From Macrostomum lignano (Eukaryota), in contig NIVC01000247.1 of NCBI GenBank assembly GCA_002269645.1, positions 559,095 through 623,094 on the forward strand: a stretch of DNA of 64,000 nucleotides, written 5' to 3'. Positions 30,037-54,288 of this stretch are shown piece after piece. Within the stretch, counting starts at the first letter, position 1. Each line of letters begins with the position of its first letter. The position numbers were made by a program, and so were the translations under genes. The notes beneath the pieces were generated by a model that had not been told where the DNA came from, made no database searches, and worked only from the letters and a program-made list of their open reading frames with translations.

Positions 30037-30051
30037 TCCGGCACCCTGACA

Positions 30052-30500
30052 TCTAGAGGGTGTCAGATGGGGCTCCAATCTAGAGGGTGTCAGATGGGAC
30101 TCCAATCTAGAGGGTGTCAGATGGGACTCCAATCTAGAGGGTGTCAGATGGGGCTCCAATCTAGAGGCTGTCAGATGGGGCTCCAATCTGGAGGGTGTCA
30201 GATGGGGCTCCAATCTAGAGGGTGTCAGATGGGGCGCCAATCTAGAGGATGCCAGATGGGGCGCCAATCTAGAGGGTGTCAGATGGGACACCAATCTAGA
30301 GGGTGTCAGATGGGGCGCCAATCTAGAGGGTGCCAGATGGGACACCAATCTAGAGGGTGTCAGATGGGGCGCCAATCTAGAGGGTGCCAGATGGGACACC
30401 AATCTAGAGGGTGTCAGATGGGGCGCCAATCTAGAGGGTGCCAGATGGGGCGCCAATATAGAGGGTGTCAGATGGGGCTCAAATCTAGAGGGTGTCAGAT
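30052..30500. repeat. 27-bp minisatellite, ~16 copies
   Basis: gggg(ct/cg)ccaatctagagggtgtcagat. Confidence 0.95.
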
Positions 30501-30607
30501 AAGAACTACAAGCTAGTCGTTGGTGTCAAGTCGCACCAATCTTCCTTGTCAGAGGACTTCAATCTCAAGTTTCGATGATGCAATTGCTGACACAAAAGCC
30601 AATTTCT

Positions 30608-30937
30608 GATGGTGACTGTAGGGATGGTGACTGTAGGGATGGTGACTGTAAAGATGGTGACTGTAGGGATGGTGACTGTAGGGATGGTGACTGTAGGGAT
30701 GGTGACTGTAGGGATGGTGACTGTAGGGATGGTGACTGCAAGGATGGTGACTGTAGGGATGGTGACTGTAGGGATGGTGACTGTAGGGATGGTGACTGTA
30801 GGGATGGTGACTGTAGGGATGGTGACTGCAAGGATGGTGACTGTAGGGATGGTGACTGTAGGGATGCTGACTGTAGGGATGGTGACTGTAGGGATGGTGA
30901 CTGTAGGGATGGTGACTGTAGGGATGGTGACTGTAGA
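30608..30937. repeat. 15-bp minisatellite, ~22 copies
   Basis: gatggtgactgtagg. Confidence 0.96.
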
Positions 30938-32229
30938 GACTGTCTGATACATGCATCTGATTTGTCTCCCTGATTCATGTTGTCTAAAACTAATGATGCA
31001 GCTTCTGTCCCAATGCTTCATTGATTGAAGTTGGCGGAAGCAACTGTACTTCAATCTCTGTGGCTTCCATAAAAGAAACGTAAGTGACCAATTGGTACAG
31101 CTCCACTAACAACCAATCCATTCCATCAGATTTTTATAGCTCTACTAAAAACCAATCCATTCCACTAGAGAGCCTGAGAAGTGGGCCTTTATGATGGAGA
31201 ATCGCCTCTGGCCAATCGCACTGAATCGAACCACAGTTCATGCAATTTTTCGTTTTTTTCGAAGACGCATTTCGGCTGAGCTGCTCAGCCTCTCAACTGC
31301 AGTCTCGGGCTTCATCAGTTGTTTACCATTAAAGTGCAGCCGAGCTCTGGCAGCCTATCTCTCTTCTATCCAGCTCTCGGCCGCAGCAATGCACTGCATT
31401 TTGCAGTCCTGCTAACAATGGCTGTTAACAATAGTTATTTATGACAGAATAACGCAGTCTTGAGGCGTATAGGGAGCGGGTGGGTAGAGAGGCCAGCTCA
31501 AACTCAAGCAGCAATTATCTCTGCTCGCTCGCTATTCTCAGGCCAGCACACGGCTCTGCCAGCCTCCCTGCGGTTTAAAGGCCAGCTCTGTCCAGGCTTT
31601 GCGGTTGCCGGGGGCAACCAGCAGTGCTGTACTCAGTCTGTTTTGAGTAGTCAGCTGGGTGGGGCTGCATTCTAGCTGGACTTGTTTATTGCATCTGAGA
31701 CAGGGGTTACGGGGGGTTGGGTGGTTCGAGAGGCCAGTATGGGGTGATTACGAACTCGAAAAGTTTTCTCTTTGCCAGCTTGTATCACGCCAGACTATCG
31801 CACTGCGAGTGCTGAGCTGGGTGGGGCCGTTCCAGATGAAGGTCAGAGACTGCGAGCGCATTTTCAGTGATTTGTTTTTGCAATGTTGCCTCAGGCGCTG
31901 CTCTTCAGCTGCAGTGTCTGGAGCGGCAGGTCAAGACAAGATTTTGGCGCTGCGGTTTCTTAAACAGCAGAACGCATATAAATCAGAGATGAAGCGCATC
32001 TGCAGGCTCTTAAATAAATCAGTATTCACAGGAGCGCTGCGGGCTCTCTGGCGCAACGCTTTCGGCGGCATCGTGACGCAACCAGTGCTGACGGCGACTC
32101 CTGAGCCATGCAAGCGCGCCAATGCTGTACGCACGCACAGCACTCATGCACACGCTCACACAGGGTGTACAGCGGCTCCGACTTTCTTATCCTGTCAGGC
32201 ATGTACACTTTCTGTGCCTTGGGGGCCGG

Positions 32230-32365
32230 CCGGCTGCGAATCACACTAAAACTCATTGGGCCAAATTTTCCTGCTCACACAAGCCCGAGTGAGTGCGGCC
32301 GCGCTCGGAATCGAACCCAGGGTCACGGTGGGAGAATCCGGCGAGTTTGGCGCTGCTCTGCCCGT
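32230..32365 (-). mobile_element. Probable tRNA-derived SINE fragment
   Basis: Minus-strand B-box GGGTTCGATTCC at 32307-32318; the A-box is weak. Confidence 0.4.
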
Positions 32366-32419
32366 GTTCGCAAACCCTTTGCTCAAATTCAGTTGCAATT
32401 CAACTAATCCGACTGGGAG

Positions 32420-32915
32420 CGCCCCTGTCTCTTGCCGGGCACCCCTGTCTCTTGCCGGGTACCCCTGTCTCTTGCCGGGCACCCCTGTCTCTTGCCGGGC
32501 ACCCCTGTCTCTTGCCGGGCACCCCTGTCTCTTGCCGGGCACCCCTGTCTCTTGCCGGGCGCCCCTGTCTCTTGCCGGGCACCCCTGTCTCTTGCCGGGT
32601 ACCCCTGTCTCTTGCCGGGCAATCCTGTCTCTTGCCGGGCACCCCTGTCTCTTGCCGGGCGCCCCTGTCTCTTGCCGGGCACCCCTGTCTCTTGCCGGGC
32701 ACCCCTGTCTCTTGCCGGGCACCCCTGTCTCTTGCCGGGCGCCCCTGTCTCTTGCCGGGCACCCCTGTCTCTTGCCGGGCGCCCCTGTCTCTTGCCGGGC
32801 ATCCCTGTCTCTTGCCGGGCACCCCTGTCTCTTGTCGAGCACCCCTGTCTCTTGCCGGGCACCCCTGTCTCTTGCCGGGCATCCCTGTCTCTTGCCGGGC
32901 ACCCCTGTCTCTTGC
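32420..32915. repeat. 20-bp minisatellite GGGC(A/G)CCCCTGTCTCTTGCC, ~25 copies
   Basis: Read directly; the unit is nearly the same as the right part of the 16310-17010 array. Confidence 0.96.
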
Positions 32916-33556
32916 CACAGAGGCCGGTTGCCACCTGTTCAAAACATGAAACAGAAGGAGCGGCAGTGATGAGAGGCTTCTGCAGAAAAGCGAAAGAATT
33001 TCAATATTATTGCCGCTAAATGCACTCGCCTAATTCAACCCAGCAGACTCTCAACTGCCTGAGCTGCGCACGAGAGGAACAGGTGAAAGCATAGGAGAGT
33101 CGGGAGAGAGCCAGAGCCCTGTTGCCAGCCAGCCAATGCTCTGCAGCTGCTGCAGTTACGAAGGCCAGTGGGCAGAGTGAGAGAGAAAACTGGCCCAGTT
33201 TAGCAATGCATTTTCTGTACATTTGACCGCCTCCTCAAACCGATGCACTGCGGGACTGAGCAGCATTTTACACCGCTCAGTGGGCCATTAAATGCATTTA
33301 AAGATCTCACACTGCACTCAGGCACAATGGGTCAGCTCAGCCTCATCAAGTACACCTTGGGGTGGCCGCTGCAGCCGCAGTCTCTCCGTTGCCATGCTGG
33401 GTGCACAGAGGCAAAAGCGCTCACGCTCGGGAGAGAAGTTTCGGTTGCTGAGGCCGGGTGGTCAAGGGGTGGCCTCGCCAGAGGCTGCAAAAATGTGAGC
33501 AGCTGAGGAATGAGGCGTTAAAAATTTTCTGGCAACCCGCTGCACAAACCTTTGAA

Positions 33557-34130
33557 ACACCTGCCACTCTGACAGCAGCCGTGACTGACATCTGCCACTC
33601 TGACAGCAGCCGTGACTGACATCTTCCACTCTGACAGCAGCCGTGACTCACATCTGCCACTCTGACAGCAGCCGTGACTGACATCTTCCACTCTGACCGC
33701 AGCCGTGACTGACAATTGCCACTCTGACAGCAGCCGTGACTGACACCTGCCACTCTGACAGCAGCCGTGACTGACATCTGCCACTCTGACAGCAGCCGTG
33801 ACTGACATCTGCCACTCTGACAGCAGCCGTGACTGACATCTTCCACTCTGACAGCAGCCGTGACTGACATCTTCCACTCTGACAGCAGCCGTGACTGACA
33901 TCTGCCACTCTGACAGCAGCCGTGACTGACATCTTCCACTCTGACAGCAGCCGTGACTGACATCTGCCACTCTGACAGCAGCCGTGACTGACATCTGCCA
34001 CTCTGACAGCAGCCGTGACTCACATCTGCCACTCTGACAGCAGCCGTGACTGACATCTGCCACTCTGACAGCAGCCGTGACTGACATCTGCCACTCTGAC
34101 AGCAGCCGTGACTGACATCTGCCACTCTGA
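33557..34130. repeat. 31-bp minisatellite ending ~90 bp upstream of the ankyrin-cGLR start codon
   Basis: ctgccactctgacagcagccgtgactgacat, ~18 copies. Confidence 0.96.
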
Positions 34131-34221
34131 CATCTTGTTTCCCTCTTCCTCCCTCTTTCTCCCTTCCTCTCTCTTATTTTCTCCTACTAGACTTTTCTTA
34201 TCCATACCGCTCTCCAGAACA

Positions 34222-37200
34222 ATGGGCCAAAATCAAAGCCGACATAAGCAAGCGACCACCGAAAACATTACTGCTGCAGCACGGAAAGGTCGCTTTCAAG
34301 ACGTCAAGTTTCTCCTCTCACAAATCAATGACCAATCAAACAGGGACACCTGCTGCATCAAAGCTGCCGAAAATGCTGCAGACAATGGTCACTTTGAAAT
34401 CGTCAAGTTTCTCCTCTCACAAATCAATGACCAATCAAACAGGGACACCTGCTGCATCAAAGCTGCCGAAAAAGCTGCACTCCGTGGTCACTTTGAAATC
34501 GTCAAGTTTCTCCTCTCACAAATCAATGACCAATCAAACAGGGACACCTGCTGCATCAAAGCTGCCGAAAATGCTGCAAACAATGGTCACTTTGAAATCG
34601 TCAAGTTTCTCCTCTCACAAATCAATGACCAATCAAACAGGGACACCTGCTGCATCAAAGCTGCCGAAAATGCTGCAAACAATGGTCACTTTGAAATCGT
34701 CAAGTTTCTCCTCTCACAAATCAATGACCAATCAAACAGGGACACCTGCTGCATCAAAGCTGCCGAAAATGCTGCACTCCGTGGTCACTTTGAAATCGTC
34801 AAGTTTTTCCTGTCACAAATCAATGACCAATCAAACAGGGACACCTGCTGCATCAAAGCTGCCGAAAAGCTGCACTCCGTGGTCACTTTGAAATCGTCAA
34901 GTTTCTCCTCTCACAAATCAATGACCAATCAAACAGGGACACCTGCTGCATCAAAGCTGCCGAAAATGCTGCAAACAATGGTCACTTTGAAATCGTCAAG
35001 TTTCTCCTCTCACAAATCAATGACCAATCAAACAGGGACACCTGCTGCATCAAAGCTGCCGAAAATGCTGCAATGGTCACTTTGAAATCGTCAAGTTTCT
35101 CGTCCCACAAATCAATGACCAATCAAACAGGGACACCTGCTGCATCAAAGCTGCCGAAAATGCTGCAAACAATGGTCACTTTGAAATCGTCAAGTTTCTC
35201 CTCTCACAAATCAATGACCAATCAAACAGGGACACCTGCTGCATCAAAGCTGCCGAAAATGCTGCACTCCGTGGTCACTTTGAAATCGTCAAGTTTCTCC
35301 TCTCACAAATCAATGACCAATCAAACAGGGACACCTGCTGCATCAAAGCTGCCGAAAATGCTGCACTCCGTGGTCACTTTGAAATCGTCAAGTTTCTCCT
35401 CTCACAAATCAATGACCAATCAAACAGGGACACCTGCTGCATCAAAGCTGCCGAAAATGCTGCACTCCGTGGTCACTTTGAAATCGTCAAGTTTCTCCTC
35501 TCACAAATCAATGACCAATCAAACAGGGACACCTGCTGCATCAAAGCTGCCGAAAATGCTGCAGACAATGGTCACTTTGAAATCGTCAAGTTTCTCGTCC
35601 CACAAATCAATGACCAATCAAACAGGGACACCTGCTGCATCAAAGCTGCCGAAAAGCTGCACTCCGTGGTCACTTTGAAATCGTCAAGTTTCTCCTCTCA
35701 CAAATCAATGACCAATCAAACAGGGACACCTGCTGCATCAAAGCTGCCGAAAATGCTGCACTCCGTGGTCACTTTGAAATCGTCAAGTTTCTCCTCTCAC
35801 AAATCAATGACCAATCAAACAGGGACACCTGCTGCATCAAAGCTGCCGAAAATGCTGCAGACAATGATCACTTTGAAATCGTCAAGTTTCTCGTCCCTCA
35901 AATCAATGACCAATCAAACAGGGACACCTGCTGCATCAAAGCTGCCGAAAAAGCTGCAAAAGATGATGACTTTGAAAGCGTCAAGTTTCTCCTCTCACAA
36001 ATCAATGACCAATCAAACAGGGACACCTGCTGCATCAAAGCTGCCGAAAATGCTGCAAAGAAGGGTCACTTTGAAATCGTCAAGTTTCTCCTCTCACAAA
36101 TCAATGACCAATCAAACAGGGACACCTGCTGCATCAAAGCTGCCGAAAATGCTGCACTCCGTGGTCACTTTGAAATCGTCAAGTTTCTCCTCTCACAAAT
36201 CAATGACCAATCAAACAGGGACACCTGCTGCATCAAAGCTGCCGAAAATGCTGCACTCCGTGGTCACTTTGAAATCGTCAAGTTTCTCCTCTCACAAATC
36301 AATGACCAATCAAACAGGGACACCTGCTGCATCAAAGCTGCCGAAAATGCTGCACTCCGTGGTCACTTTGAAATCGTCAAGTTTCTCCTCTCACAAATCA
36401 ATGACCAATCAAACAGGGACACCTGCTGCATCAAAGCTGCCGAAAATGCTGCAGACAATGGTCACTTTGAAATCGTCAAGTTTCTCTCCACAAATCAATG
36501 ACCAATCAAACAGGGACACCTGCTGCATCAATGCCGCCGAAAAAGCTGCACTCCGTGGTCACTTTGAAATCGTCAAGTTTCTCCTCTCACAAATCAATGA
36601 CCAATCAAACAGGGACACCTGCTGCATCAAAGCTGCCGAAAATGCTGCACTCCGTGGTCACTTTGAAATCGTCAAGTTTCTCCTCTCACAAATCAATGAC
36701 CAATCAAACAGGGACACCTGCTGCATCAAAGCTGCCGAAAATGCTGCAGACAATGATCACTTTGAAATCGTCAAGTTTCTCGTCCCTCAAATCAATGACC
36801 AATCAAACAGGGACACCTGCTGCATCAAAGCTGCCGAAAAAGCTGCAAAAGATGATGACTTTGAAAGCGTCAAGTTTCTCCTCTCACAAATCAATGACCA
36901 ATCAAACAGGGACACCTGCTGCATCAAAGCTGCCAAAAATGCTGCAAAGAAGGGTCACTTTGAAATCGTCAAGTTTCTCCTCTCACAAATCAATGACCAA
37001 TCAAACAGGGACACCTGCTGCATCAAAGCTGCCGAAAATGCTGCACTCCGTGGTCACTTTGAAATCGTCAAGTTTCTCCTCTCACAAATCAATGACCAAT
37101 CAAACAGGGACACCTGCTGCATCAAAGCTGCCGAAAATGCTGCAGACAATGGTCACTTTGAAATCGTCAAGTTTCTCGTCCCACAAATCAATGACCAATC

Positions 37201-40200
37201 AAACAGGGACACCTGCTGCATCAAAGCTGCCGAAAAAGCTGCAAACAATGGTCACTTTGAAATCGTCAAGTTTCTCGTCCCACAAATCAATGACCAATCA
37301 AACAGGGACACCTGCTGCATCGAAGCTGCCTGCTGTCAAGTTTCTCTCGTCACAAATCAATGACCAATCAAACAGGGACACCTGCTGCATCAAAGCTGCC
37401 GAAAATGCTGCACTCCGTGGTCACTTTGAAATCGTCAAGTTTTTCCTGTCACAAATCAATGACCAATCAAACAGGGACACCTGCTGCATCAAAGCTGCCG
37501 AAAAGCTGCACTCCGTGGTCACTTTGAAATCGTCAAGTTTCTCGTCCCACAAATCAATGACCAATCAAACAGGGACACCTGCTGCATCAAAGCTGCCGAA
37601 AATGCTGCACTCCGTGGTCACTTTGAAATCGTCAAGTTTTTCCTGTCACAAATCAATGACCAATCAAACAGGGACACCTGCTGCATCAAAGCTGCCGAAA
37701 ATGCTGCACTCCGTGGTCACTTTGAAATCGTCAAGTTTCTCCTCTCACAAATCAATGACCAATCAAACAGGGACACCTGCTGCATCAAAGCTGCCGAAAA
37801 TGCTGCAGACAATGGTCACTTTGAAATCGTCAAGTTTCTCCTCTCACAAATCAATGACCAATCAAACAGGGACACCTGCTGCATCAAAGCTGCCGAAAAT
37901 GCTGCACTCCGTGGTCACTTTGAAATCGTCAAGTTTCTCCTCTCACAAATCAATGACCAATCAAACAGGGACACCTGCTGCATCAAAGCTGCCGAAAATG
38001 CTGCACTCCGTGGTCACTTTGAAATCGTCAAGTTTTCCTCTCACAAATCAATGACCAATCAAACAGGGACACCTGCTGCATCAAAGCTGCCGAAAATGCT
38101 GCACAATGGTCACTTTGAAATCGTCAAGTTTCTCCTCTCACAAATCAATGACCAATCAAACAGGGACACCTGCTGCATCAAAGCTGCCGAAAAAGCTGCA
38201 CTCCGTGGTCACTTTGAAATCGTCAAGTTTCTCCTCTCACAAATCAATGACCAATCAAACAGGGACACCTGCTGCATCAAAGCTGCCGAAAATGCTGCAA
38301 ACAATGGTCACTTTGAAATCGTCAAGTTTCTCCTCTCACAAATCAATGACCAATCAAACAGGGACACCTGCTGCATCAAAGCTGCCGAAAATGCTGCACT
38401 CCGTGGTCACTTTGAAATCGTCAAGTTTCTCCTCTCACAAATCAATGACCAATCAAACAGGGACACCTGCTGCATCAAAGCTGCCGAAGATGCTGCAATT
38501 CGTGGTCACTTTGAAATCGTCAAGTTTCTCGTCCCACAAATCAATGACCAATCAAACAGGGACACCTGCTGCATCAAAGCTGCCGAAAATGCTGCAAACA
38601 ATGGTCACTTTGAAATCGTCAAGTTTCTCCTCTCACAAATCAATGACCAATCAAACAGGGACACCTGCTGCATCAAAGCTGCCGAAAATGCTGCAAACAA
38701 TGGTCACTTTGAAATCGTCAAGTTTCTCCTCTCACAAATCAATGACCAATCAAACAGGGACACCTGCTGCATCAAAGCTGCCGAAAATGCTGCACTCCGT
38801 GGTCACTTTGAAATCGTCAAGTTTCTCCTCTCACAAATCAATGACCAATCAAACAGGGACACCTGCTGCATCAAAGCTGCCGAAAATGCTGCACTCCGTG
38901 GTCACTTTGAAATCGTCAAGTTTCTCCTCTCACAAATCAATGACCAATCAAACAGGGACACCTGCTGCATCAAAGCTGCCGAAAATGCTGCACTCCGTGG
39001 TCACTTTGAAATCGTCAAGTTTCTCGTCCCACAAATCAATGACCAATCAAACAGGGACACCTGCTGCATCAAAGCTGCCGAAAATGCTGCATGTCACTTT
39101 GAAATCGTCAAGTTTCTCCTCTCACAAATCAATGACCAATCAAACAGGGACACCTGCTGCATCAAAGCTGCCGAAAATGCTGCAAAGAAGGGTCACTTTG
39201 AAATCGTCAAGTTTCTCCTCTCACAAATCAATGACCAATCAAACAGGGACACCTGCTGCATCAAAGCTGCCGAAAATGCTGCACTCCGTGGTCACTTTGA
39301 AATCGTCAAGTTTCTCCTCTCACAAATCAATGACCAATCAAACAGGGACACCTGCTGCATCAAAGCTGCCGAAAATGCTGCAGACAATGGTCACTTTGAA
39401 ATCGTCAAGTTTCTCGTCCCACAAATCAATGACCAATCAAACAGGGACACCTGCTGCATCAAAGCCGCCGAAAAAGCTGCAAACAATGGTCACTTTGAAA
39501 TCGTCAAGTTTCTCGTCCACAAATCAATGACCAATCAAACAGGGACACCTGCTGCATCAAAGCTGCCGAAAAGCTGCAAACAATGGTCACTTTGAAATCG
39601 TCAAGTTTCTCGTCCCACAAATCAATGACCAATCAAACAGGGACACCTGCTGCATCAAAGCTGCCGAAAATGCTGCACTCCGTGGTCACTTTGAAATCGT
39701 CAAGTTTCTCCTCTCACAAATCAATGACCAATCAAACAGGGACACCTGCTGCATCAAAGCTGCCGAAAATGCTGCACTCCGTGGTCACTTTGAAATCGTC
39801 AAGTTTCTCCTCTCACAAATCAATGACCAATCAAACAGGGACACCTGCTGCATCAAAGCTGCCGAAAATGCTGCACAATGGTCACTTTGAAATCGTCAAG
39901 TTTCTCGTCCCACAAATCAATGACCAATCAAACAGGGACACCTGCTGCATCAAAGCTGCCGAAAATGCTGCACTCCGTGGTCACTTTGAAATCGTCAAGT
40001 TTCTCCTCTCACAAATCAATGACCAATCAAACAGGGACACCTGCTGCATCAAAGCTGCCGAAAATGCTGCACTCCGTGGTCACTTTGAAATCGTCAAGTT
40101 TCTCCTCTCACAAATCAATGACCAATCAAACAGGGACACCTGCTGCATCAAAGCTGCCGAAAATGCTGCAGACAATGTCACTTTGAAATCGTCAAGTTTC

Positions 40201-43200
40201 TCGTCTCAAAATCAATGACCAATCAAACAGGGACACCTGCTGCATCAAAGCTGCCGAAAAAGCTGCAAAAATGGTCACTTTGAAATCGTCAAGTTTCTCC
40301 TCTCACAAATCAATGACCAATCAAACAGGGACACCTGCTGCATCAAAGCTGCCGAAAAAGCTGCAAACAATGGTCACTTTGAAATCGTCAAGTTTCTCGT
40401 CTCACAAATCAATGACCAATCAAACAGGGACACCTGCTGCATCAAAGCTGCCGAAAATGCTGCAGACAATGGTCACTTTGAAATCGTCAAGTTTCTCCTC
40501 TCACAAATCAATGACCAATCAAACAGGGACACCTGCTGCATCAAAGCTGCCGAAAATGCTGCACTCCGTGGTCACTTTGAAATCGTCAAGTTTCTCCTCT
40601 CACAAATCAATGACCAATCAAACAGGGACACCTGCTGCATCAAAGCTGCCGAAAATGCTGCACTCCGTGGTCACTTTGAAATCGTCAAGTTTCTCCTCTC
40701 ACAAATCAATGACCAATCAAACAGGGACACCTGCTGCATCAAAGCTGCCGAAAATGCTGCACTCCGTGGTCACTTTGAAATCGTCAAGTTTCTCCTCTCA
40801 CAAATCAATGACCAATCAAACAGGGACACCTGCTGCATCAAAGCTGCCGAAAATGCTGCACAATGGTCACTTTGAAATCGTCAAGTTTCTCCTCTCACAA
40901 ATCAATGACCAATCAAACAGGGACACCTGCTGCATCAAAGCTGCCGAAAATGCTGCACTCCGTGGTCACTTTGAAATCGTCAAGTTTCTCCTCTCACAAA
41001 TCAATGACCAATCAAACAGGGACACCTGCTGCATCAAAGCTGCCGAAGATGCTGCAATTCGTGGTCACTTTGAAATCGTCAAGTTTCTCGTCCCACAAAT
41101 CAATGACCAATCAAACAGGGACACCTGCTGCATCAAAGCTGCCGAAAATGCTGCAAACAATGGTCACTTTGAAATCGTCAAGTTTCTCCTCTCACAAATC
41201 AATGACCAATCAAACAGGGACACCTGCTGCATCAAAGCTGCCGAAAATGCTGCAAACAATGGTCACTTTGAAATCGTCAAGTTTCTCCTCTCACAAATCA
41301 ATGACCAATCAAACAGGGACACCTGCTGCATCAAAGCTGCCGAAAATGCTGCACTCCGTGGTCACTTTGAAATCGTCAAGTTTCTCCTCTCACAAATCAA
41401 TGACCAATCAAACAGGGACACCTGCTGCATCAAAGCTGCCGAAAATGCTGCACTCCGTGGTCACTTTGAAATCGTCAAGTTTCTCCTCTCACAAATCAAT
41501 GACCAATCAAACAGGGACACCTGCTGCATCAAAGCTGCCGAAAATGCTGCACTCCGTGGTCACTTTGAAATCGTCAAGTTTCTCCTCTCACAAATCAATG
41601 ACCAATCAAACAGGGACACCTGCTGCATCAAAGCTGCCGAAAATGCTGCACTGTGGTCACTTTGAAATCGTCAAGTTTCTCCTCTCACAAATCAATGACC
41701 AATCAAACAGGGACACCTGCTGCATCAAAGCTGCCGAAAATGCTGCAAAGATGGTCACTTTGAAATCGTCAAGTTTCTCCTCTCACAAATCAATGACCAA
41801 TCAAACAGGGACACCTGCTGCATCAAAGCTGCCGAAAATGCTGCACTCCGTGGTCACTTTGAAATCGTCAAGTTTCTCCTCTCACAAATCAATGACCAAT
41901 CAAACAGGGACACCTGCTGCATCAAAGCTGCCGAAAATGCTGCACAATGGTCACTTTGAAATCGTCAAGTTTCTCGTCCACAAATCAATGACCAATCAAA
42001 CAGGGACACCTGCTGCATCGAAGCTGCCGAAAAAGCTGCAAACAATGGTCACTTTGAAATCGTCAAGTTTCTCGTCCCACAAATCAATGACCAATCAAAC
42101 AGGGACACCTGCTGCATCGAAGCTGCCGAAAAAGCTGCAAACAATGGTCACTTTGAAATCGTCAAGTTTCTCGTCCCACAAATCAATGACCAATCAAACA
42201 GGGACACCTGCTGCATCAAAGCTGCCGAAAATGCTGCACTCCGTGGTCACTTTGAAATCGTCAAGTTTCTCCTCTCACAAATCAATGACCAATCAAACAG
42301 GGACACCTGCTGCATCAAAGCTGCCGAAAATGCTGCACTCCGTGGTCACTTTGAAATCGTCAAGTTTCTCCTCTCACAAATCAATGACCAATCAAACAGG
42401 GACACCTGCTGCATCAAAGCTGCCGAAAATGCTGCACTGTGTCACTTTGAAATCGTCAAGTTTCTCCTCTCACAAATCAATGACCAATCAAACAGGGACA
42501 CCTGCTGCATCAAAGCTGCCGAAAATGCTGCACTGTGGTCACTTTGAAATCGTCAAGTTTCTCCTCTCACAAATCAATGACCAATCAAACAGGGACACCT
42601 GCTGCATCAAAGCTGCCGAAAATGCTGCACTCCGTGGTCACTTTGAAATCGTCAAGTTTCTCCTCTCACAAATCAATGACCAATCAAACAGGGACACCTG
42701 CTGCATCAAAGCTGCCGAAAATGCTGCACAATGGTCACTTTGAAATCGTCAAGTTTCTCGTCTCAAAATCAATGACCAATCAAACAGGGACACCTGCTGC
42801 ATCAAAGCTGCCGAAAAAGCTGCAAAAGATGATGACTTTGAAAGCGTCAAGTTTCTCCTCTCACAAATCAATGACCAATCAAACAGGGACACCTGCTGCA
42901 TCGAAGCTGCCGAAAAAGCTGCAAACAATGGTCACTTTGAAATCGTCAAGTTTCTCGTCTCACAAATCAATGACCAATCAAACAGGGACACCTGCTGCAT
43001 CAAAGCTGCCGAAAATGCTGCAGACAATGGTCACTTTGAAATCGTCAAGTTTCTCCTCTCACAAATCAATGACCAATCAAACAGGGACACCTGCTGCATC
43101 AAAGCTGCCGAAAATGCTGCACTGTGTCACTTTGAAATCGTCAAGTTTCTCCTCTCACAAATCAATGACCAATCAAACAGGGACACCTGCTGCATCAAAG

Positions 43201-46200
43201 CTGCCGAAAATGCTGCACTCCGTGGTCACTTTGAAATCGTCAAGTTTCTCCTCTCACAAATCAATGACCAATCAAACAGGGACACCTGCTGCATCAAAGC
43301 TGCCGAAAATGCTGCACTCCGTGGTCACTTTGAAATCGTCAAGTTTCTCCTCTCACAAATCAATGACCAATCAAACAGGGACACCTGCTGCATCAAAGCT
43401 GCCGAAAATGCTGCACTGTGGTCACTTTGAAATCGTCAAGTTTCTCCTCTCACAAATCAATGACCAATCAAACAGGGACACCTGCTGCATCAAAGCTGCC
43501 GAAAATGCTGCACTGTGGTCACTTTGAAATCGTCAAGTTTCTCCTCTCACAAATCAATGACCAATCAAACAGGGACACCTGCTGCATCAAAGCTGCCGAA
43601 AATGCTGCACTGTGTCACTTTGAAATCGTCAAGTTTCTCCTCTCACAAATCAATGACCAATCAAACAGGGACACCTGCTGCATCAAAGCTGCCGAAAATG
43701 CTGCACTCCGTGGTCACTTTGAAATCGTCAAGTTTCTCCTCTCACAAATCAATGACCAATCAAACAGGGACACCTGCTGCATCAAAGCTGCCGAAAAAGC
43801 TGCACTCCGTGGTCACTTTGAAATCGTCAAGTTTCTCGTCCCACAAATCAATGACCAATCAAACAGGGACACCTGCTGCATCAAAGCTGCCGAAAATGCT
43901 GCACTCCGTGGTCACTTTGAAATCGTCAAGTTTCTCGTCCCACAAATCAATGACCAATCAAACAGGGACACCTGCTGCATCAAAGCTGCCGAAAATGCTG
44001 CAGACAATGATCACTTTGAAATCGTCAAGTTTCTCGTCCCTCAAATCAATGACCAATCAAACAGGGACACCTGCTGCATCAAAGCTGCCAAAAATGCTGC
44101 AGACAATGGTCACTTTGAAGTCGTTGATTTTCTTTTTTCGTGTCTCTCAAGTCCCGATAAGAGAGCGAATCTCCGTTTCCAATGCGCAGTCGCAGCTTGC
44201 TCTCGTCTTCACGAAAATTTCGTTGCCTCCCTGAGCCTCGAGCCCGACTGGCTCTTTCAATCCAGCACCATCCTCAGCTTCATTGCAGCAATGGCCATCG
44301 AAGGCAGCAACTCTGTTCTCACCGACACCCTCTCTCGAATGCAGCCAGATCAAATCACACAGCTGCTCTGTCTCTCCATCTCTCAAAGACACGTCGCTGC
44401 TGCCGCCACACTGCTCAATCATAAGCGATTCAGCACACAGCATGTCGATCTCCCAGACGACAACACCGGAGCCACCGCTCTCATGCTCGCAGCTGATGCA
44501 GGTCATCACGAACTCATTCACAAACTCATCGATCTCGGCGCCTCACTGCACGCTCAAGACACTCACGGTCGCACTGCTCTGTCACGAGCCTGCCAAGCCG
44601 GTCACGTGCGAGCAGCCAAGACTCTCATCGACAATGGAGCCGATGCCAGCCATCGAGACAATCAGGGCCTCACGTGTGCGCATCTCGCACAGCGATTTGA
44701 GCAGCGGCAGGTGCTGCGGCTGCTAAATCCCACCGAGTCAGTTGCCATTTGTTGTCATTAGTTGCAATTCTACTTGCAATCACTTCGCTACTTTACCTCG
44801 CTTTCCTTCACGCATTCCAGAATAACACAGCACCTACAGCCAGCCGCTCACCGCCTCCATCCGTGAGTCTGACCGCTTTCATTCCCCATTTCCTTCTTTG
44901 GGTGGAGCTTGGGCCACTCAGCAAATCCGCCTCCACTCACTCCACTCTCACCTCTCCCCAGACTCTGGGACCACTCCGAGCAGGACCGCCGTCTAAGCAG
45001 GGAGCTGCATCGACTGCTCAGCGATGCGGGATTCACCGAGCAGAGAGCAAAGTGTCAGCAGAGACTGGCTGACTGGCTGCAACAAGTCGCTCGAGTCCTC
45101 ACACAGGATGGCAGGCAGATGACGGGCAGCTACGCAGAGGGCTGGGCCAACAGTCTGGTGCAAGTGAACGGCAGGACAGCTGCAGACTCGGACATTGACT
45201 GGACTGTGCTGGTTGCTGGGCAAGAGTTCCATCTGGAAGGTGGCTGTGAACAGAAGAGTTGGCGTGATTCCTGCAAAGACGCCACTCCGCTGCAGGTCAA
45301 GGAGGGCCACGCACAGGTGGCAGTCGGAGCAGGTCAGTGAGGCTGGGTTCTTCATCCCAATCCCCATGCCAATCCAAGACTCTTAAATCTGCTCAATTAT
45401 TTATTGGATACCGAGTGGCTGAATTTCTGAGTTCATAAGTTCAACATGAGTTCGAAACCTTGTTGAAATACCATGCAGCACTCATTTCGCTTGAAATACA
45501 AATTGTGGCAACTAATCACTCCGATCGCACCTATCTCATAGGTTATGAAACAATTATTATGCAATTTCAGGCACATACATTATAAGCATGCATACAGTAC
45601 GCAATACGTGAAAACCTGATCTGAATGAAAGTAAAATAATTGTCTCTTTACCTAACCATCATCAACTCCGTTGCGGTGCCCCTGCAAGCATTGCAACGAA
45701 TTATTGATTGCAGTAGTAGCACTGACACATGAGAAGAACGAACTCAACTAACACATTCAGGCAGTTTCAACCAACCCATCTTTTCCACTCGCCACAAAGC
45801 GACTCTCCGCTCACTGCGCTCTGCAGGCAGCCAACCTGCAGTGACAGCCACGGCGTGCGGTGTGCGGCCTGCACAGGACACGTGCCATGCGATCGAGTGC
45901 TGCAGCAGTTTCTGTAAGGACAGGATTGAAAAACTGGTTGGATACAGTGGTTTTGTTCACCTCGTTCGGGCGACCAGACCGAGCTCGACCAACGAGCTCA
46001 GAGTGAGCTTCAGCTTCCTAGAGAAACACATCATGAGACGGCTGAGCACAGTCCAGGGCCAGTTGTTCACACTCATCAAGTTCATCTTCAAGAGACACTT
46101 GCCGCTCACTCTGGCCACACCTGGACTCAAGACCTACCATGCAAAGACTCTACTATTCTTCATGCTGGAGAAGCATGGCACAGATCCTAAAACTGAGGCT

Positions 46201-47304
46201 TGGCAGCCCCACAATCTGATCGCTCTGCTCAAGGAGTCTCTCGACATGATGCTGAGCTTCATCGACTCAAGCAGCAGCTCGCCCGATGAGTGCATGCCGC
46301 ACTTCTTCATGCTCAACGCTCCGCTCTACTTCAAGAACGCTGGAATCGGCGGCGACTTTGACAACACGAAGGCGAGGATTCGAGACCGACTTTGTGAGCT
46401 GAGAAGCGACATCGGCGGAGTGGTCGAGCAGCTGAGGAGACTCGTGAGACCTCTGCAGTCAGAGAAGTTCTATTTTCACCCGTTCACTCTGCTGCCTCTG
46501 ACAGCGCCGCCTGCTGTCACGAAGATCAGGGAAGGAAGTGATCGCTATCCAACAATGTACTACAAGTTCGCAGACGTGTACAGTGTGGTGCACCAGTGTG
46601 TGAGCGAGCTGCAGTCGGAATCGAGAGACAGAGACACCCTGATGAGGCAGCTCAGTCTCCTGCATGAGCTGCAGTGGTGCAAGTGCGCCGCCCTGTGCAT
46701 GACCGCCATGGCGCATTTGAAGTTCGGAGAATCTGAGGAGGCTGATAGACTCGCGATGGAGCTGCAGAGACATCAGGTTGAGTCAGGGTTGAAGCCAAAT
46801 GATATTCGAAAAGAGAGCTACATTACAAAACTGCCAGAAGACTCAGACTGGGCGTGGAGGTTCTGCCTCCCCTGCGACTCTCCGCCTCGCTTCCCATTCC
46901 TTCCCGAGTTCACGCAGACTCTGTTCACAGCCAGACTGTCGCAGCCTCTCTCCTCCCACCTGTACGTAAACTTCCGCTGCCTGAGCTGGAGTCTCCAAGC
47001 TGAGCTGCTCCGCAATCGCGCACCTGCAATCGCATTCGATCATTGGATTGAACAGCTGCTTGGAGACCCGGACTTGGAGGAGCTGCTCACTCTGGCTCAC
47101 TACAGCGACTGCCGCGAGCACGTGGAGCTCAGCCTGCAGCAGATGGAGATGATCGAGAAAGAGAGACGCGTCGCCATGGAGACGCAGGACGAGGAGAAGA
47201 TCGGCTGGGTCAGGCAGAAGCTGGAGAGACTTGATGCAGCAGCTGGAGTCCTCAAAGTCGAGTCGCAAAGTGGAGGTCGGAAAATGAAGGCTGAGTCAGA
47301 CTGA
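34222..47304 (+). CDS. Ankyrin-array + Mab-21/cGAS-like nucleotidyltransferase (cGLR-like) gene; predicted exons 34222-44736, 44821-44862, 44962-45332 and 45827-47304; exon 1 has many frameshifts as assembled
   Basis: ATG at 34222 (MGQNQS). All three introns are GT-AG (donors GTCAGT, GTGAGT, GTCAGT) with compatible phases 2/2/1. NTase motifs: GSYAEG...SDIDWTVLV, QDTCHAIEC, LRVSFSFLEK, LKTYHAKTLLFFMLE, CMPHFF. Confidence 0.85.
34303..44122 (+). repeat. Coding tandem array of ~99 copies of a 99-bp (33-aa) ankyrin-type repeat
   Basis: Unit DTCCIKAAENAAxxGHFEIVKFLLSQINDQSNR; AAxxGHxEIVxxLL is the ankyrin core. Array length of ~9.8 kb divided by 99 bp gives the copy estimate. Confidence 0.95.
44440..44730 (+). 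CDS. Canonical ankyrin repeats (about 3) at the end of exon 1
   Basis: DNTGATALMLAADAGHHELIHKLIDLGA, DTHGRTALSRACQAGHVRAAKTLIDNGAD, DNQGLTCAHLA. Confidence 0.93.
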
Positions 47305-47414: not shown

Positions 47415-47655
47415 GAAAACACCTATACATGCTGTTGGATTGTCTGTACATGCTGTTGGATTGTCTCTACATGCTGTTGGATTGTCTGTACATGCTGTTG
47501 GATTGTCTCTACATGCTGTTGGATTGTCTGTACATGCTGTTGGATTGTCTCTTCATGCTGTTGGATTGTCTCTTCATGCTGTTGGATTGTCTCTTCATGC
47601 TGTTGGATTGTCTCTTCATGCTGTTGGATTGTCTGTACATGCTGTGGGATTGTCT
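47415..47655. repeat. 21-bp minisatellite, ~11 copies
   Basis: catgctgttggattgtct(gta/cta/ctt). Confidence 0.94.
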
Positions 47656-47724
47656 CTAAGAACCTGCTCTCAGAATGAGCTCAATCAGTCAGCAAGTTGA
47701 TTTCATGTACTTTAATCATGTAGT

Positions 47725-47870
47725 CATGAACATTCAGTGACTGACAGCCTGACATCTCCCTCATGAACAGTCAGTGACTGACAGCCTGACAGCTCCCTCA
47801 TGAACATTCAGTGACTGACAGCCTGACAGCTCCCTCATGAACATTCAGTGACTGACAGCCTGACAGCTCC
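47725..47870. repeat. 37-bp tandem repeat, ~4 copies
   Basis: catgaacattcagtgactgacagcctgacagctccct. Confidence 0.9.
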
Positions 47871-48519
47871 CCAGTGTGCATCAAGTACAATTCCATTATT
47901 TTATTTATTGCTGTTTCGTATTGGCCAAAATACTTCGTAGATATATGATAAAATTCCCCAGTCTGTAATTCAGTATTTCAGCTGTCTTTGGTAAAATACG
48001 CTTGTACTGCACTTATTTAACCATGCTTGCTTGCTTTTTCCAGTCTGCAAATAAATTTGAAAATGAATTCTCCAGCTCACCCTTTGTGTTCTCTGCCCCA
48101 CAATGCTGCCTTGAAAGTGTCGCCTGATGAAGAATGACTTTTGAGTTAAAAATCAAAATTCCTGAAAAACGAGAATCCTACCGGGAATCCCGTGCAAGAC
48201 CCTAAAATTTATCATTAACGAAATCCCTGAAGACAAAAATAAAAGTACATAAAAGGCTGCAAGGCCACAATAACATCAAAGGTCAGCCGGCACCTCCTCA
48301 GCCAGCAGGCAGTCGCAGAATCGCCGGTGGTTGCCTGCAGCGCCAGCAGCGGCACCTCCTGAACTTCCGGCTGTGGGTGGCCGCTCGGCTCTGCAGCATC
48401 TGCAGTGCAGCAGCCGCCTCAGCCTGCGGTTCGAGCGACTCCGCCAGCGTCCGGGTCTCGGCGTTGCATGGAGCTGCGCCGCCCTCTGACGGTCAGGCAG
48501 GGCCTGCAGGACCGCCCGC

Positions 48520-49050
48520 ACACAGCCAAAGGCAGCCCTCACACAGCCAAATGCAGCCCTCACACAGTCAAATGCAGCCCTCACACAGCCAAATGCAGCC
48601 CTCACACAGCGTCAGGCAGCCCTCACACAGTCAAAGGCAGCCCTCACACAGCCAAATGCAGCCCTCACACAGCGACAGGCAGCCCTCACACAGCCAAAGG
48701 CAGCCCTCACACAGCGTCAGGCAGCCCTCACACAGTCAAAGGCAGCCCTCACACAGCCAAAGGCAGCCCTCACACAGCCAAAGGCAGCCCTCACACAGCG
48801 ACAGGCAGCCCTCACACAGCCAAAGGCAGCCCTCACACAGCGACAGGCAGCCCTCACACAGCCAAAGGCAGCCATCACACAGCCACAGGCAGCCCTCACA
48901 CAGCCAAAGGCAGCCCTCACACAGCCAAAGGCAGCCATCACACAGCCACAGGCAGCCCTCACACAGCCAAATGCAGCCCTCACACAGCGACAGGCAGCCA
49001 TCACACAGCCAAAGACAGCCCACACACAGCCAAACACAGCCTGACACAGC
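48520..49050. repeat. 21-bp minisatellite, ~25 copies
   Basis: cacacagccaaaggcagccct and variants. Confidence 0.95.
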
Positions 49051-49259
49051 CAAAGAAACGCAGAGGAAAGAACACTGCATAGATAATCAATCAAACAAAT
49101 GAATCTCCCAGCTCAATTTATTTAGTCTAAACCGCTTTCTAGGAAACAAAGCTTTCTAGGAAACCAAGCTTTCTAGGAAATATGCGCAAAAATATACGCT
49201 TGTACAAATCTTTTGAGACTTTTTAACTTTCAGCTTTAAATGGTTATCTCTAGATCATG

Positions 49260-49545
49260 ACTGACTCATCTGTATTAGCGCCACTGACTCATCTGCAATT
49301 GGTGCCACTGACTCATCTGCAATTGGTGCCACTGACTCATCTGTATTAGCGCCACTGACTCATCTGCAATTGGTGCCACTGACTCATCTGCAATTGGTGC
49401 CACTGACTCATCTGTATTAGCGCCACTGACTCATCTGCAATTGGTGCCACTGACTCATCTGCAATTGGTGCCACTGACTCATCTGCAATTGGTGCCACTG
49501 ACTCATCTGCAATTGGTGCCACTGACTCATCTGTATTGGCGCCAT
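49260..49545. repeat. 24-bp minisatellite, ~12 copies, each containing TGACTCA
   Basis: actgactcatctgcaattggtgcc and actgactcatctgtattagcgcc. Confidence 0.94.
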
Positions 49546-49740
49546 CTCATCCCACACGCTATCTGATCCCACACTATCTGATCTCACACCCTATCTGATC
49601 CCACACCTTATTTGATCCCACACCCTATCTGATTCCACACTATCTGATCTCACACCTTATCTGATCCCACACCCTATCTGATCCCACACTATCTGATCCC
49701 ACACCTTATCTGATCCCACACCCTATCTCATCCCACAGAT
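49545..49740. repeat. 19-20-bp minisatellite, ~10 copies
   Basis: ctatctgatcccacac(c). Confidence 0.9.
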
Positions 49741-49849
49741 AGGGTGTGAGTGTTCCTGGGAAAGTCCAGATGCTTAGATATATATTAAGCTTATCACTTT
49801 TTATAGAACAGGCCTACTAACTTTCTTAGTAGTGAAGACGTACAGAATC

Positions 49850-51630
49850 GGACAGAATTACCTTGACTTTGCTCCCAATTAGGACAGAATTACCTTGACT
49901 TTGCTCCCAATTAGGACAGAATTACCTTGACTTTGCTCCCAATTAGGACAGAATTACCTTGACTTTGCTCCCAATTAGGACAGAATTACCTTGACTTTGC
50001 TCCCAATTAGGACAGAATTACCTTGATTTTGCTTCCAACTATATAGATAGACTGTAAAAAATTAACCCGCAGTGACACGCACTAATCCAACGGAGACCAT
50101 CACTGACCTAATCCAAGTGTCGATCAGTGACCCGCTTAATGGCAAATGATCTTCACTGACCCGAACTAATCCAAGTGGCCTTCAGTAACAGGCATTAATC
50201 CAAGTGGCCTTTAGTGAACCGCACTAATCCAACAGTGACAATCACTGACCCGCACTAATCCAATTGACCATCAGTGACCCGCACTAATCCAAGTGACCAT
50301 CAGTGACCCGCACTAATCCAACAGTGACAATCACTGTCCCGCACTAATCCAAGTTACTATCAGTGACCCGCACTAATCCAAGTGGCCTTCAGTGACCGGC
50401 ACTAATCCAAGTGAACTTTAGTGAATCGCACTAATCTACGTGACTCAGTTACTGGACAAAATTACCTGAAATTTGCTCCCCACTACACAGATCTGGAGGC
50501 CGGACAGAATTACCTGAAATTTGCTCCCCACTACACAGATCTGGAGGCCGGACAGAATTACCTGAAATTTGCTCCCCACTACACAGATCTGGAGGCCGGA
50601 CAGAATTACCTGAAATTTGCTCCCCACTACACAAATCTGGAGGCCGGACAGAATTACCTGAAATTTGCTCCCCACTACACAGATCTGGAGGCCGGACAGA
50701 ATTACCTGAAATTTGCTCCCCACTACACAAATCTGGAGGCCGGACAGAATTACCTGAAATTTGCTCCCCACTACACAAATCTGGAGGCCGGACACAATTA
50801 CCTGAAATTTGCTCCCCACTACACAAATCTGGAGGCCGGACAGAATTACCTGAAATTTGCTCCCCACTACACAGATCTGGAGGCCGGACAGAATTACCTG
50901 AAATTTGCTCCCCACTACACAGATTTGGAGGCCGAACAGAATTACCTGAAATTTGCTCCCCACTACACAAATCTGGAGGCCGGACAGAATTACCTGAAAT
51001 TTGCTCATTACTACACAGATCTGGAGGCCGGACAGAATTACCTGAAATTTGCTCCCCACTACACAGATCTGGAGGCCGGACAGAATTACCTGAAATTTGC
51101 TCCCCACTACACAGATCTGGAGGCCGGACAGAATTACCTGAAATTTGCTCCCCACTACACAAATCTGGAGGCCGGACAGAATTACCTGAAATTTGCTCCC
51201 CACTACACAGATCTGGAGGCCGGACAGAATTACCTGAAATTTGCTCCCCACTACACAAATCTGGAGGCCGGACAGAATTACCTGAATTTTGCTCCCCACT
51301 ACAGTAGAAGGCATGAGGGGGCTTCTGGGACAAAATTTTTCACCTCCTCCATAATCCCATTAAATCCATCCATATTATCCCCGACAGAATCAGAAAAAAA
51401 GGGGGGGTCGCCCTTGCTCCGAAAACATCCTCCATAATCCCATTAAATCCATCCATATTATCCCTGACAGAATCAGAAAAAAAGGGGGGTCGCACTCGCT
51501 CACAAAACATCGTCCATAATCCACCTAAATCCATCCATATTATCCCTGACAGAATCATGAAAAAGTGGAGGGGTCGCACTTGTTCTGAAAACTTCGAACA
51601 TAATCCTATTAAATCCATCCATATTACCCC
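49850..51630. repeat. Putative left terminal region with four tandem arrays: 32 bp x6 (49850-50040), ~29 bp (50070-50440), 48 bp x~18 (50454-51303) and ~83 bp x4 (51350-51630)
   Basis: The 32-bp and 48-bp units share GGACAGAATTACC..TTTGCTCCC; the 83-bp unit contains GACAGAATC. Confidence 0.9.
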
Positions 51631-52076: not shown

Positions 52077-52080
52077 TTTC

Positions 52081-52951: not shown

Positions 52952-52971
52952 TTTTTTCACAAAAAAAATAT

Positions 52972-54258: not shown

Positions 54259-54288
54259 TTTTTAACTAAAAATAAAATAAAATAAGAA

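Follow-up and report, generated by a model that had tools for sequence, protein, structure and literature searches.

An ankyrin-cGLR family gene of Macrostomum lignano with a frame-broken array of about 99 near-identical repeat units

Introduction

Does the flatworm Macrostomum lignano make a giant sensor in which some 99 ankyrin-type repeats are fused to a cGAS-like nucleotidyltransferase? The question is raised by a 64,000-nucleotide stretch of DNA (here, the window; GenBank assembly GCA_002269645.1, contig NIVC01000247.1, positions 559,095 to 623,094 of the forward strand). A first-pass annotation, made from the sequence alone, joined four exons of this window into a ~400-kDa receptor and considered its architecture possibly undescribed. 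Searching the literature for a Macrostomum STING or cGAS yielded no relevant reports. We analyzed the repeat array, its reading frame, the enzyme domain, and the related genes of the same organism.

Results

Layout of the locus

The gene comprises the following features (window coordinates).

34155..34221, + strand: candidate 3' acceptor, a polypyrimidine tract running to an AG 4 nt before the ATG (…CTCTCCAG/AACA ATG)
34222..34287, + strand: start codon and N-terminal peptide MGQNQSRHKQATTENITAAARK; the paralog P0004 opens with the same N-terminus (MGQNQSRHQQATTENI)
34222..44736, + strand: exon 1 of the first-pass model
34288..44124, + strand: tandem array of ~99 units of 99 bp, each a 33-residue ankyrin-like repeat (TRF, Pfam Ank_2, AF2, Foldseek)
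37330..37400, + strand: partial 70-bp unit (spacing of 169 bp), at which TRF divides the array into two parts
44125..44467, + strand: non-repeat linker (CLSSPDKRAN…) joining the array to the canonical ankyrins
44468..44725, + strand: three canonical ankyrin repeats (GATALMLAADAGHHELIHKLIDLGA…, HGRTALSRACQAGH…, QGLTCAHLAQ…; Pfam Ank, Ank_3, and Ank_4)
44737..44820, + strand: intron 1, GT…AG, with an ungapped paralog alignment at the junction NPTE/ITQH
44821..44862, + strand: exon 2, 42 nt
44863..44961, + strand: intron 2, GT…AG, with an ungapped paralog alignment
44962..45332, + strand: exon 3, nucleotidyltransferase N-lobe with GS (45125-45130) and the DID acidic pair (45191-45199)
45333..45826, + strand: intron 3, GT…AG, 494 bp, with an ungapped paralog alignment
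45827..47304, + strand: exon 4, with the third catalytic Asp (45877-45879), both Mab-21 motifs, the Mab-21_C match, the C-terminal extension, and the stop codon (47302-47304)

The tract ahead of the ATG is a candidate acceptor, judged from its sequence, for either spliced-leader trans-splicing, which affects ~39% of M. lignano transcripts (PMC5730564), or a 5'-UTR intron. The N-terminal peptide contains an MGxxxS consensus of the PROSITE N-myristoylation type and may therefore be myristoylated. The 70-bp partial unit could reflect a genuine rearrangement or else a join made during assembly. The linker includes an internal Met (MAIEGSNS, 44291-44314) that is the annotated start of another paralog, P0002. 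The three introns described earlier hold: all are bounded by GT and AG, their phases fit the frame of the post-array tail, and a paralog protein aligns without gaps across all three junctions. Likewise, Pfam matches at 44468-44725 bear out the three canonical ankyrins downstream of the array.

The array consists of atypical ankyrin-like repeats

The array itself is real in the assembled sequence. TRF reports it with scores of 5316 and 12136 at 95 to 96% matches, and 99 to 100 units were counted, in agreement with the ~99 of the first-pass annotation. The unit translates as GHFEIVKFLLSQINDQSNRDTCCIKAAENAALR. A query made of the last array units and the canonical repeats matches Pfam Ank_2 with an E value of 1.4e-48. 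In AF2 models, in-frame repeats form an ankyrin-like solenoid (pLDDT >95), in which each unit folds as a 17-residue helix and a 9-residue helix, and the top structural matches of the array model in Foldseek are DARPins, AnkB, and FEM1C. Neither the TPLH motif (unit translations) nor the beta-hairpin (AF2 model) was found in the array units; unlike these, the three downstream repeats (44468-44725) do conform to the canonical Ank profile. Thus, the array units are predicted to be ankyrin repeats in the sense of a 33-residue helix-turn-helix solenoid, although not in the canonical sense defined by TPLH and the hairpin.

Variation between the units falls on repeat positions 32 and 33. These immediately precede the GH turn, in the region through which ankyrins classically bind. 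Because 30 of the 74 intact units are identical, the array offers little recognition diversity. The ankyrin frame of the intact units contains no stop codon, and higher-order patterns of unit variants are coherent along the array.

The array frame is broken about 20 times

Of the unit-to-unit spacings, 20 are frame-changing (98, 97, 95, or 169 bp) and five more reflect in-frame deletions, while 74 units are exactly 99 bp long. Accordingly, no uninterrupted frame runs through the array in phase with both the ATG and the exons that follow, and the joined exon model fails as a coding frame: exon 1 is not open, the first stop following 287 codons after the ATG, and the joined model has 145 stops and a total of 12,406 nt (1 modulo 3). 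The frame of the ATG differs from that of the post-array tail. The longest open frame has 779 codons, and the longest open stretch within the array spans ~21 repeats. A ~400-kDa protein cannot be translated from the assembled sequence because ~20 frameshifts interrupt the array; for the same reason, the window sequence does not demonstrate a giant sensor. The ~2.5 kb of non-array coding sequence has no frame defects. An antisense gene over the array was considered and rejected, since the minus strand lacks open reading frames of at least 80 codons there.

The nucleotidyltransferase domain

The motifs reported earlier can all be read in the sequence: GS, DID, the third Asp (PAQDTCHA), RVSFSFLEK (from 46000), and GLKTYHAKT (from 46123), the last three lying in exon 4. 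They provide a complete active-site set (GSYAEGW, SDIDW, and PAQDTCHA). The assignment to the Mab-21 group was upheld for one of the two Pfam families that the first-pass annotation had named: PF20266 (Mab-21_C) matches at ~46111-46317 inside exon 4, marginally (25.4 bits against a cutoff of 24.1; E value of 1.6e-5), whereas PF03281 gave no match at an E value of 1 or less. The link to PF03281 is therefore indirect, through distant matches of the family profile that carry PF03281. Querying the PDB sequences with the enzyme part as a single sequence returned only an alanine dehydrogenase (E value of 0.035), which we regard as a chance match; thus, profile and fold searches were needed.

These searches agree with each other. 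The family profile reaches bona fide PF03281+PF20266 proteins, and against PDB sequences its only matches are MAB21L1, cGAS, and cGLR1, the alignments to MAB21L1 and cGAS covering the PF20266 region. The AF2 model of the enzyme domain (pLDDT of 78; pTM of 0.80) was compared with the PDB by Foldseek, and the best 50 of 51 matches with an E value of 0.001 or less are cGAS, MAB21L1, or Sp-cGLR1. Among the best matches (4k9b, 5eom, and 8gjy; E values of 3e-5 to 7e-4; target TM score of ~0.5), the helical Mab-21_C region and the (S/T)YH.KT motif are shared, while identity is only 13 to 19%. The window domain further differs from these structures by a longer GS-to-DxD loop and by an extra acidic C-terminal domain of ~250 residues (pI of 5.3) that has no match and is confined to the Macrostomum ankyrin-cGLR family. 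Fold search, profile search, profile comparison with the PDB, and PF20266 together support a cGAS-like/Mab-21 nucleotidyltransferase fused to ankyrins.

From fold and motifs, we infer that the domain is likely a cGLR-type signaling enzyme. In the model, DID lies directly ahead of a strand (residues 93 to 105), and the third Asp (residue 155) lies directly ahead of another (156 to 162). Across the main clade of paralogs (57 to 89% identity), GS, DID, and the third Asp are conserved; S70 is invariant among the paralogs, G69 is nearly so, and DxD and the third acidic residue are kept in most. Alternatively, the domain could lack catalysis and serve as a scaffold, a role proposed for MAB21L1 or MiD51, with the ankyrins alone acting. 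The missing PF03281 match would fit such a role, as would the loss of acidic residues in the distant paralogs P0035 (N..N) and P0036 (IK) and the low AF2 confidence in the loops that flank the catalytic residues (75 to 91 and 137 to 154). Moreover, Li et al. described 15 active cGLRs in 2023, and none of the M. lignano enzymes in their screen is one of them (PMC9980059). However, inactivity in vitro is common among cGLRs owing to unknown ligands, and the same authors called these proteins cGLRs and picked them for their screen (PMC9980059). Given that the complete site is kept here and through the main clade, we consider a scaffold role unlikely.

The Macrostomum ankyrin-cGLR family

M. lignano has more than 40 paralogs of this gene, the best of which show 87 to 88% identity, and some are fused to caspase or RING domains. 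Other family members have 20 to 30 divergent 33-residue repeats in frame, and transcript-based paralog annotations place the 33-residue repeats and the enzyme in one protein. The window array departs from known ANK-fused cGLRs in that its atypical units are nearly identical and lie in tandem. Repeat numbers vary by paralog locus, from ~4 (3.4) to ~30 and ~99 (window), and flanking minisatellites are common to these loci. When the first 287 residues were used as a homology query, generic ankyrin proteins dominated the results, which included neither Macrostomum proteins nor a gene call from the window.

The most informative relative is BOX15_Mlig016402g1 (PAA68676.1; P0004 above). When the window array is collapsed to four units, the two genes are colinear with 84% identity over 960 residues, without gaps across all three intron junctions. 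They share the N-terminus (MGQNQSRH…), the 33-residue repeat, the linker, the three canonical ankyrins, the nucleotidyltransferase, the C-terminal extension, and an upstream 31-bp minisatellite. However, BOX15_Mlig016402g1 has four in-frame repeat units instead of ~99, and its intron 3 contains a ~16-kb insertion bounded by inverted 84-bp repeats, compared with 494 bp in the window. Another paralog, P0070 (3,379 amino acids; enzyme at 2086 to 2394), was considered as a precedent for a giant protein and rejected because the 1,700 residues at its N-terminus appear to be mispredicted low-complexity sequence and show no 33-residue periodicity.

The architecture is not new. Li et al. reported ankyrin- and TPR-fused cGLRs (Fig. 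1C and Table S2 in PMC9980059; e.g., ANK/death-domain cGLRs of Stylophora pistillata), which share the cGAS-like core and the ankyrins with the window gene. Their Table S2 gives PAA68676.1 Ank_2 domains, and Table S3 lists it as enzyme 93 of the 140 screened (PMC9980059). Because a paralog with 84% identity was thereby catalogued as an ankyrin-fused cGLR, only the repeat number is unusual in the window gene. In the ANK-fused examples considered from Table S2, which gives spans and not repeat counts, the Ank_2 domains span residues ~16 to 330 (~1100 to 1320 in XP_037775312.1), far shorter than the window array. In both cases, the ankyrin module is presumed to bind a ligand or partner.

Origin of the frame breaks

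Deletions touch sites that are variable between units in 30 of 30 cases (P = 3e-12). Further information comes from the public M. lignano assembly, built from PacBio CLR reads with Canu and Pilon. It contains a sister locus twice (L001 and L003), and in both copies the same within-unit positions are hit. These copies are identical over a 5,455-bp flank, while their 2.8-kb arrays differ at 161 positions (95 mismatches and 66 gap openings), with 30 units in L001 and 28 in L003. Frameshifts shared between the two copies would favor real mutations; a check found that they are not shared. The disagreement between L001 and L003 makes arrays of this kind untrustworthy in that one assembly but does not establish an error in the window. 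For the window, we judge consensus errors of a near-identical tandem array to be more likely than real mutations as the source of most frame breaks.

If the assembly of the window is HiFi-grade, on the other hand, the frameshifts are probably real. Amplification of a coding minisatellite would then have killed the long frame, leaving a young pseudogene or only a short product of ~780 residues (three canonical ankyrins and the enzyme) that starts at the MAIEGSNS Met (44291), much as the P0002 annotation begins at its internal Met. The 20 frame-changing spacings and the disagreement of start and tail frames fit this scenario; two other paralog arrays of ~30 units are frame broken too, the 4-unit array being intact. 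Deletions of a given type turn up repeatedly, a pattern that copying of mutated units would produce, and the genome is rich in noncoding minisatellites that expand likewise. However, confinement of deletions to unit-variable sites is not expected of random mutation, L001 and L003 disagree inside the array only, the downstream 2.5 kb of coding sequence is free of defects, and so is the ankyrin frame of the intact units of stop codons. A high dN/dS ratio of 0.5 to 0.8 in exon 4 between the window copy and its paralogs could be taken as a sign of decay, but it is not decisive on pseudogenization because the window copy is not separable from the paralogs, which give 0.66 to 0.67 between themselves. 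On balance, we regard real frameshifts as possible, if somewhat unlikely. The array length might itself be an artifact of over-expansion, collapse, or misjoining of paralog reads, the true unit number being far smaller or different. The 70-bp partial unit breaks the periodicity, one otherwise identical locus yields both 30 and 28 units, and reads from the many near-identical paralogs could have been mixed. We nevertheless find this improbable, given the coherent higher-order variant patterns, the independent occurrence of ~30-unit arrays at other loci, and a window free of any contig-join mark.

Discussion

Taken together, the locus is a paralog of the Macrostomum ankyrin-cGLR family in which the 99-bp coding unit was probably amplified recently to ~99 near-identical copies, with frame breaks that are probably for the most part consensus errors. 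The family plan starts with an MG… peptide, followed by a variable number of atypical 33-residue ankyrin-like repeats, a linker, and three canonical ankyrins; these precede the cGAS/Mab-21-fold nucleotidyltransferase with its full GS/DxD/D site and, at the C-terminus, the family-specific extension. Unequal exchange or slippage may have driven the recent amplification. The ankyrin modules may bind a ligand or partner, or they may keep the enzyme inactive.

A bolder version, which we hold to be doubtful, takes all frameshifts as assembly errors and the array as fully translated. The animal would then make a cGLR of ~4,100 residues (~460 kDa), perhaps anchored to the membrane by a myristoyl group, with a ~99-unit ankyrin solenoid as its input module. 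Copy number (4, ~30, and ~99) and the surface residues 32 and 33 would be reshuffled by unequal exchange among paralogs. Fungal NLR-type proteins, presumed to be innate-immune receptors, have highly internally conserved ANK, WD40, or TPR repeats in near-identical tandem units, which vary at binding-surface positions and change in number by unequal exchange. They differ in that their signaling domain is NACHT or NB-ARC instead of a nucleotidyltransferase and in that their arrays usually have ~5 to 20 units, so that the comparison is an analogy, not homology. The giant protein would thus be an animal counterpart of these fast-diversifying repeat domains, placed on a nucleotide-signaling enzyme. 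If real, the ~99-unit ankyrin array would be by far the longest known to us.

If the long frame is real, it would constitute the largest ankyrin array on any innate-immune-type enzyme. It would also be a natural example of a variable-number tandem repeat that evolves as a receptor domain, and this in a phylum that, to our knowledge, is otherwise considered almost devoid of cGLR signaling. If it is not, the locus is a warning that near-identical coding repeats in long-read assemblies can mimic giant genes or pseudogenes and that such apparent genes or pseudogenes of repeat-rich genomes cannot be trusted at the base level. Whichever holds, the ankyrin-cGLR family of Macrostomum, with its more than 40 paralogs, merits experimental study.

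A repeat array of ankyrin-type units

In the gene, an array of 99-bp units is followed by a linker, three canonical ankyrin repeats, and the nucleotidyltransferase.

Features of the gene (window coordinates)
34288-44124, 99-bp tandem array (Tandem Repeats Finder, 95-96% matches)
44468-44725, three canonical ankyrin repeats, after the array and linker
44737-44820, intron 1, GT-AG
44863-44961, intron 2, GT-AG
45333-45826, intron 3, GT-AG
47304, end of the coding sequence

Tandem Repeats Finder splits the array at ~37330 into 30.8 and 69 copies of the consensus unit GHFEIVKFLLSQINDQSNRDTCCIKAAENAALR, and anchoring on a conserved 17-mer gives 99-100 units. The last array units, searched together with the following sequence, match Pfam Ank_2 (E 1.4e-48). 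When the first 287 codons, starting with the ATG at 34222, are modeled with AlphaFold2, every 33-residue unit folds into a 17-residue helix and a 9-residue helix, with pLDDT above 95 for residues 11-220; confidence drops below 50 right after residue 222, the site of the first frameshift. The best PDB neighbors of this model are ankyrin proteins only (DARPins, AnkB, and FEM1C). Because of the Ank_2 match, the helical model, and these neighbors, the units are ankyrin-type but atypical; they have neither the TPLH motif nor the beta-hairpin. Thus, the ~99 ankyrin-type repeats proposed in the first-pass annotation are confirmed, as are the roughly three canonical ankyrins and the three GT-AG introns downstream. 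The intron phases fit only one frame, which is that of the final few units and of the tail (the post-array part). A polypyrimidine tract with a terminal AG, 4 nt upstream of the ATG, is consistent with a candidate trans-splice acceptor.

The 74 intact units comprise 21 peptide variants, with 21 nonsynonymous versus 7 synonymous variant sites. Variation is concentrated at residues 32-33 (commonly LR, NN, DN, or KK), directly before the GH turn, and is lesser at residues 10-11 and 29. The pair of residues preceding GH is part of the target-binding surface in designed ankyrin proteins. An elaborate role in recognition is disfavored, however, as 30 of the 74 intact units do not differ from one another. 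Expanding noncoding minisatellites are also abundant in the window and the genome, and repeat amplification may therefore reflect mutational drive rather than adaptation.

Origin of the frame breaks

The array in the window is not one open reading frame. Seventy-four unit-to-unit spacings are 99 bp, 20 change the frame (98, 97, 95, or 169 bp), and five are in-frame deletions (96 or 93 bp). Read from the ATG, the first stop follows codon 287; the longest open frame has 779 codons, and at most ~21 consecutive units can be read in the ankyrin frame. The giant single protein of ~400 kDa envisaged earlier therefore does not hold for this sequence: with its 20 frame-changing spacings, the joined model contains 145 stops and has a length of 1 mod 3.

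The breaks could be mutations or errors of the consensus sequence. Each of the 30 deletions falls at, or no more than 1 nt from, a position that varies among units; such positions account for 41% of the unit (binomial P = 3e-12). Most fall in the hexamer for residues 32-33, whose two central positions are gapped in 16 and 14 units. Mis-piled reads of variant units would produce this pattern. Two paralog loci of the public M. lignano assembly Mlig_3_7, L001 (NIVC01002738.1) and L003 (NIVC01001464.1), have ~30-unit arrays whose defects are of the same type, and affect the same positions in the unit, as in the window. L001 and L003 represent either a double assembly of one locus or a very recent duplication: downstream of the array, 5455 aligned columns show no mismatches and one gap, and inside the 2.8-kb array (L001 6679-9545 versus L003 6086-8900) there are 95 mismatches and 66 gap openings (161 positions). 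This disagreement is a direct measure of base-level unreliability in such arrays. Frameshifts common to both loci were considered and rejected, as the unit-length patterns do not match. Canu assembly of PacBio CLR reads, followed by Pilon polishing with short reads, produced Mlig_3_7 (PMC5730564); by this procedure, short reads cannot be uniquely placed in such arrays. Furthermore, no frame defect occurs across ~2.5 kb of nonarray coding sequence in the window, and no stop in the ankyrin frame was found among the 74 intact units. The deletion sites, the recurrent defects in L001 and L003, and the discordance between these two arrays favor errors in the consensus over mutation, but are no proof that the array of the window is uninterrupted in the animal itself.

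The enzyme domain

The assignment of the fused enzyme to the cGAS-like receptor (cGLR)/Mab-21 type is borne out by its fold, profile searches, and active-site motifs. The Pfam check was divided: Mab-21_C (PF20266) matches marginally (25.4 bits versus a cutoff of 24.1), and PF03281 gives no match in the enzyme part. Modeling with AlphaFold2 from 15 family members gave a structure (pLDDT 78, pTM 0.80) whose best 50 PDB matches listed are all cGAS, MAB21L1, or coral Sp-cGLR1 (E 3e-5 to 7e-4, target-normalized TM ~0.5). Searched against PDB sequences, the family profile finds only MAB21L1, cGAS, and cGLR1 (E 0.003-0.06), in an alignment that passes through the …YH.KT… helix. Against 1.8 billion representative proteins it collects 671 relatives; all four distant relatives tested match PF20266 and PF03281, the latter above the gathering score in three. 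The GS, DID, and third Asp are present in the window enzyme and kept in the main clade, and are lost in a few distant paralogs. The enzyme core has a pI of 8.5; the C-terminal extension of ~250 residues has a pI of 5.3, and no structure matches it.

The protein would most likely be a cGLR-type signaling enzyme under the control of its ankyrin modules. The MGQNQS N terminus (34222-34240) fits the N-myristoylation consensus and is kept in the family proteins P0004 (BOX15_Mlig016402g1, PAA68676.1) and P0040 (MGQYLSC, including a Cys); this putative site suggests that the family is membrane anchored.

Paralogs, copy number, and mobile elements

The 629-residue exon 2-4 product matches more than 40 M. 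lignano proteins (best, 87-88% identical), mostly of 650-1100 residues and annotated with ankyrin and Mab-21_C domains. Compared with a version of the window gene containing only four repeat units, P0004 is colinear, with 84% identity over 960 residues, a common MGQNQSRH… N terminus, and gap-free alignment at all three intron junctions. Tail DNA is only 90-94% identical to the four paralog loci compared, and the window gene is therefore either a separate paralog or derived from a sister species.

More than 15 different minisatellite arrays, their periods ranging from 15 to 48 bp, surround the gene (window 30051-34175 and 47426-51643; also L001 and the paralog locus L002). Window and paralog loci share a 31-bp minisatellite upstream and 21-, 17-, and 37-bp minisatellites downstream; the 31-bp (ACATCTGCCACTCTGACAGCAGCCGTGACTG), 20-, 21-, 17-, and 37-bp minisatellites keep the same order around paralog genes and differ in copy number. 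Because of these common flanks, the loci are segmental duplicates; their main difference is how many 99-bp units they have (3.4, ~30, and ~99). Since other family members carry 8 to ~30 more-divergent 33-residue repeats in frame, the variable-length array is a genuine feature of the family.

Other M. lignano members of the family show uncommon domain combinations. P0044 comprises WSC, ankyrins, enzyme, and a C-terminal RING finger; P0025 has a cGLR-like enzyme first, then ankyrins and a caspase p20 domain (PF00656), an animal cGLR-caspase fusion that may merit separate attention.

The window also contains two mobile elements and two dispersed copies of an 890-bp direct repeat, 93% identical and each with a 277-codon open frame. 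The retrotransposon has a GC content of ~58-63%, higher than the surrounding sequence; that of the Maverick/Polinton-like element is ~40%. In L002, where such an element also occurs (11914-28549), the 82-84-bp repeat forms an inverted pair flanking a ~16-kb insertion in intron 3 of the paralog gene.

Other elements in the window
3700-9200, non-LTR (LINE-type) retrotransposon
5367-6236, its apurinic-type endonuclease ORF
6645-9068, its reverse transcriptase and RNase H ORF
14752-15640 and 23012-23900, 890-bp direct repeat
51345-51643, 82-84-bp tandem repeat preceding the virus-like element
51345-64000, Maverick/Polinton-like virus-like element, continuing past the window end
52972-54258, minus strand, its double-jelly-roll capsid-like ORF
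56214-57014, plus strand, its A32-like packaging ATPase
58901-61927, minus strand, its protein-primed DNA polymerase B

Relation to known cGLRs

Li et al. 2023 (PMC9980059) found 87% of cGLRs to be single-domain proteins and some to be fused to ankyrin or TPR repeats; most platyhelminths had no cGLRs beyond Mab21-like proteins. Their Table S2 places Ank_2 at residues 51-139 and 246-327 of PAA68676.1, and in Table S3, PAA68676.1 and four other M. lignano proteins (together numbers 89-93) are among 140 screened enzymes; these five were expressed without the ankyrin part. The 15 active enzymes described came from insects, anemones, molluscs, hydras, and corals. Because ankyrin-fused cGLRs including PAA68676.1 were reported there, the architecture and this Macrostomum family are already catalogued, contrary to the suggestion that the architecture might be undescribed. 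The earlier observation is thus partly confirmed and its interpretation partly supported. The remaining interest lies in the extreme copy number of a coding repeat, its variation between paralogs, and whether the array is translated.
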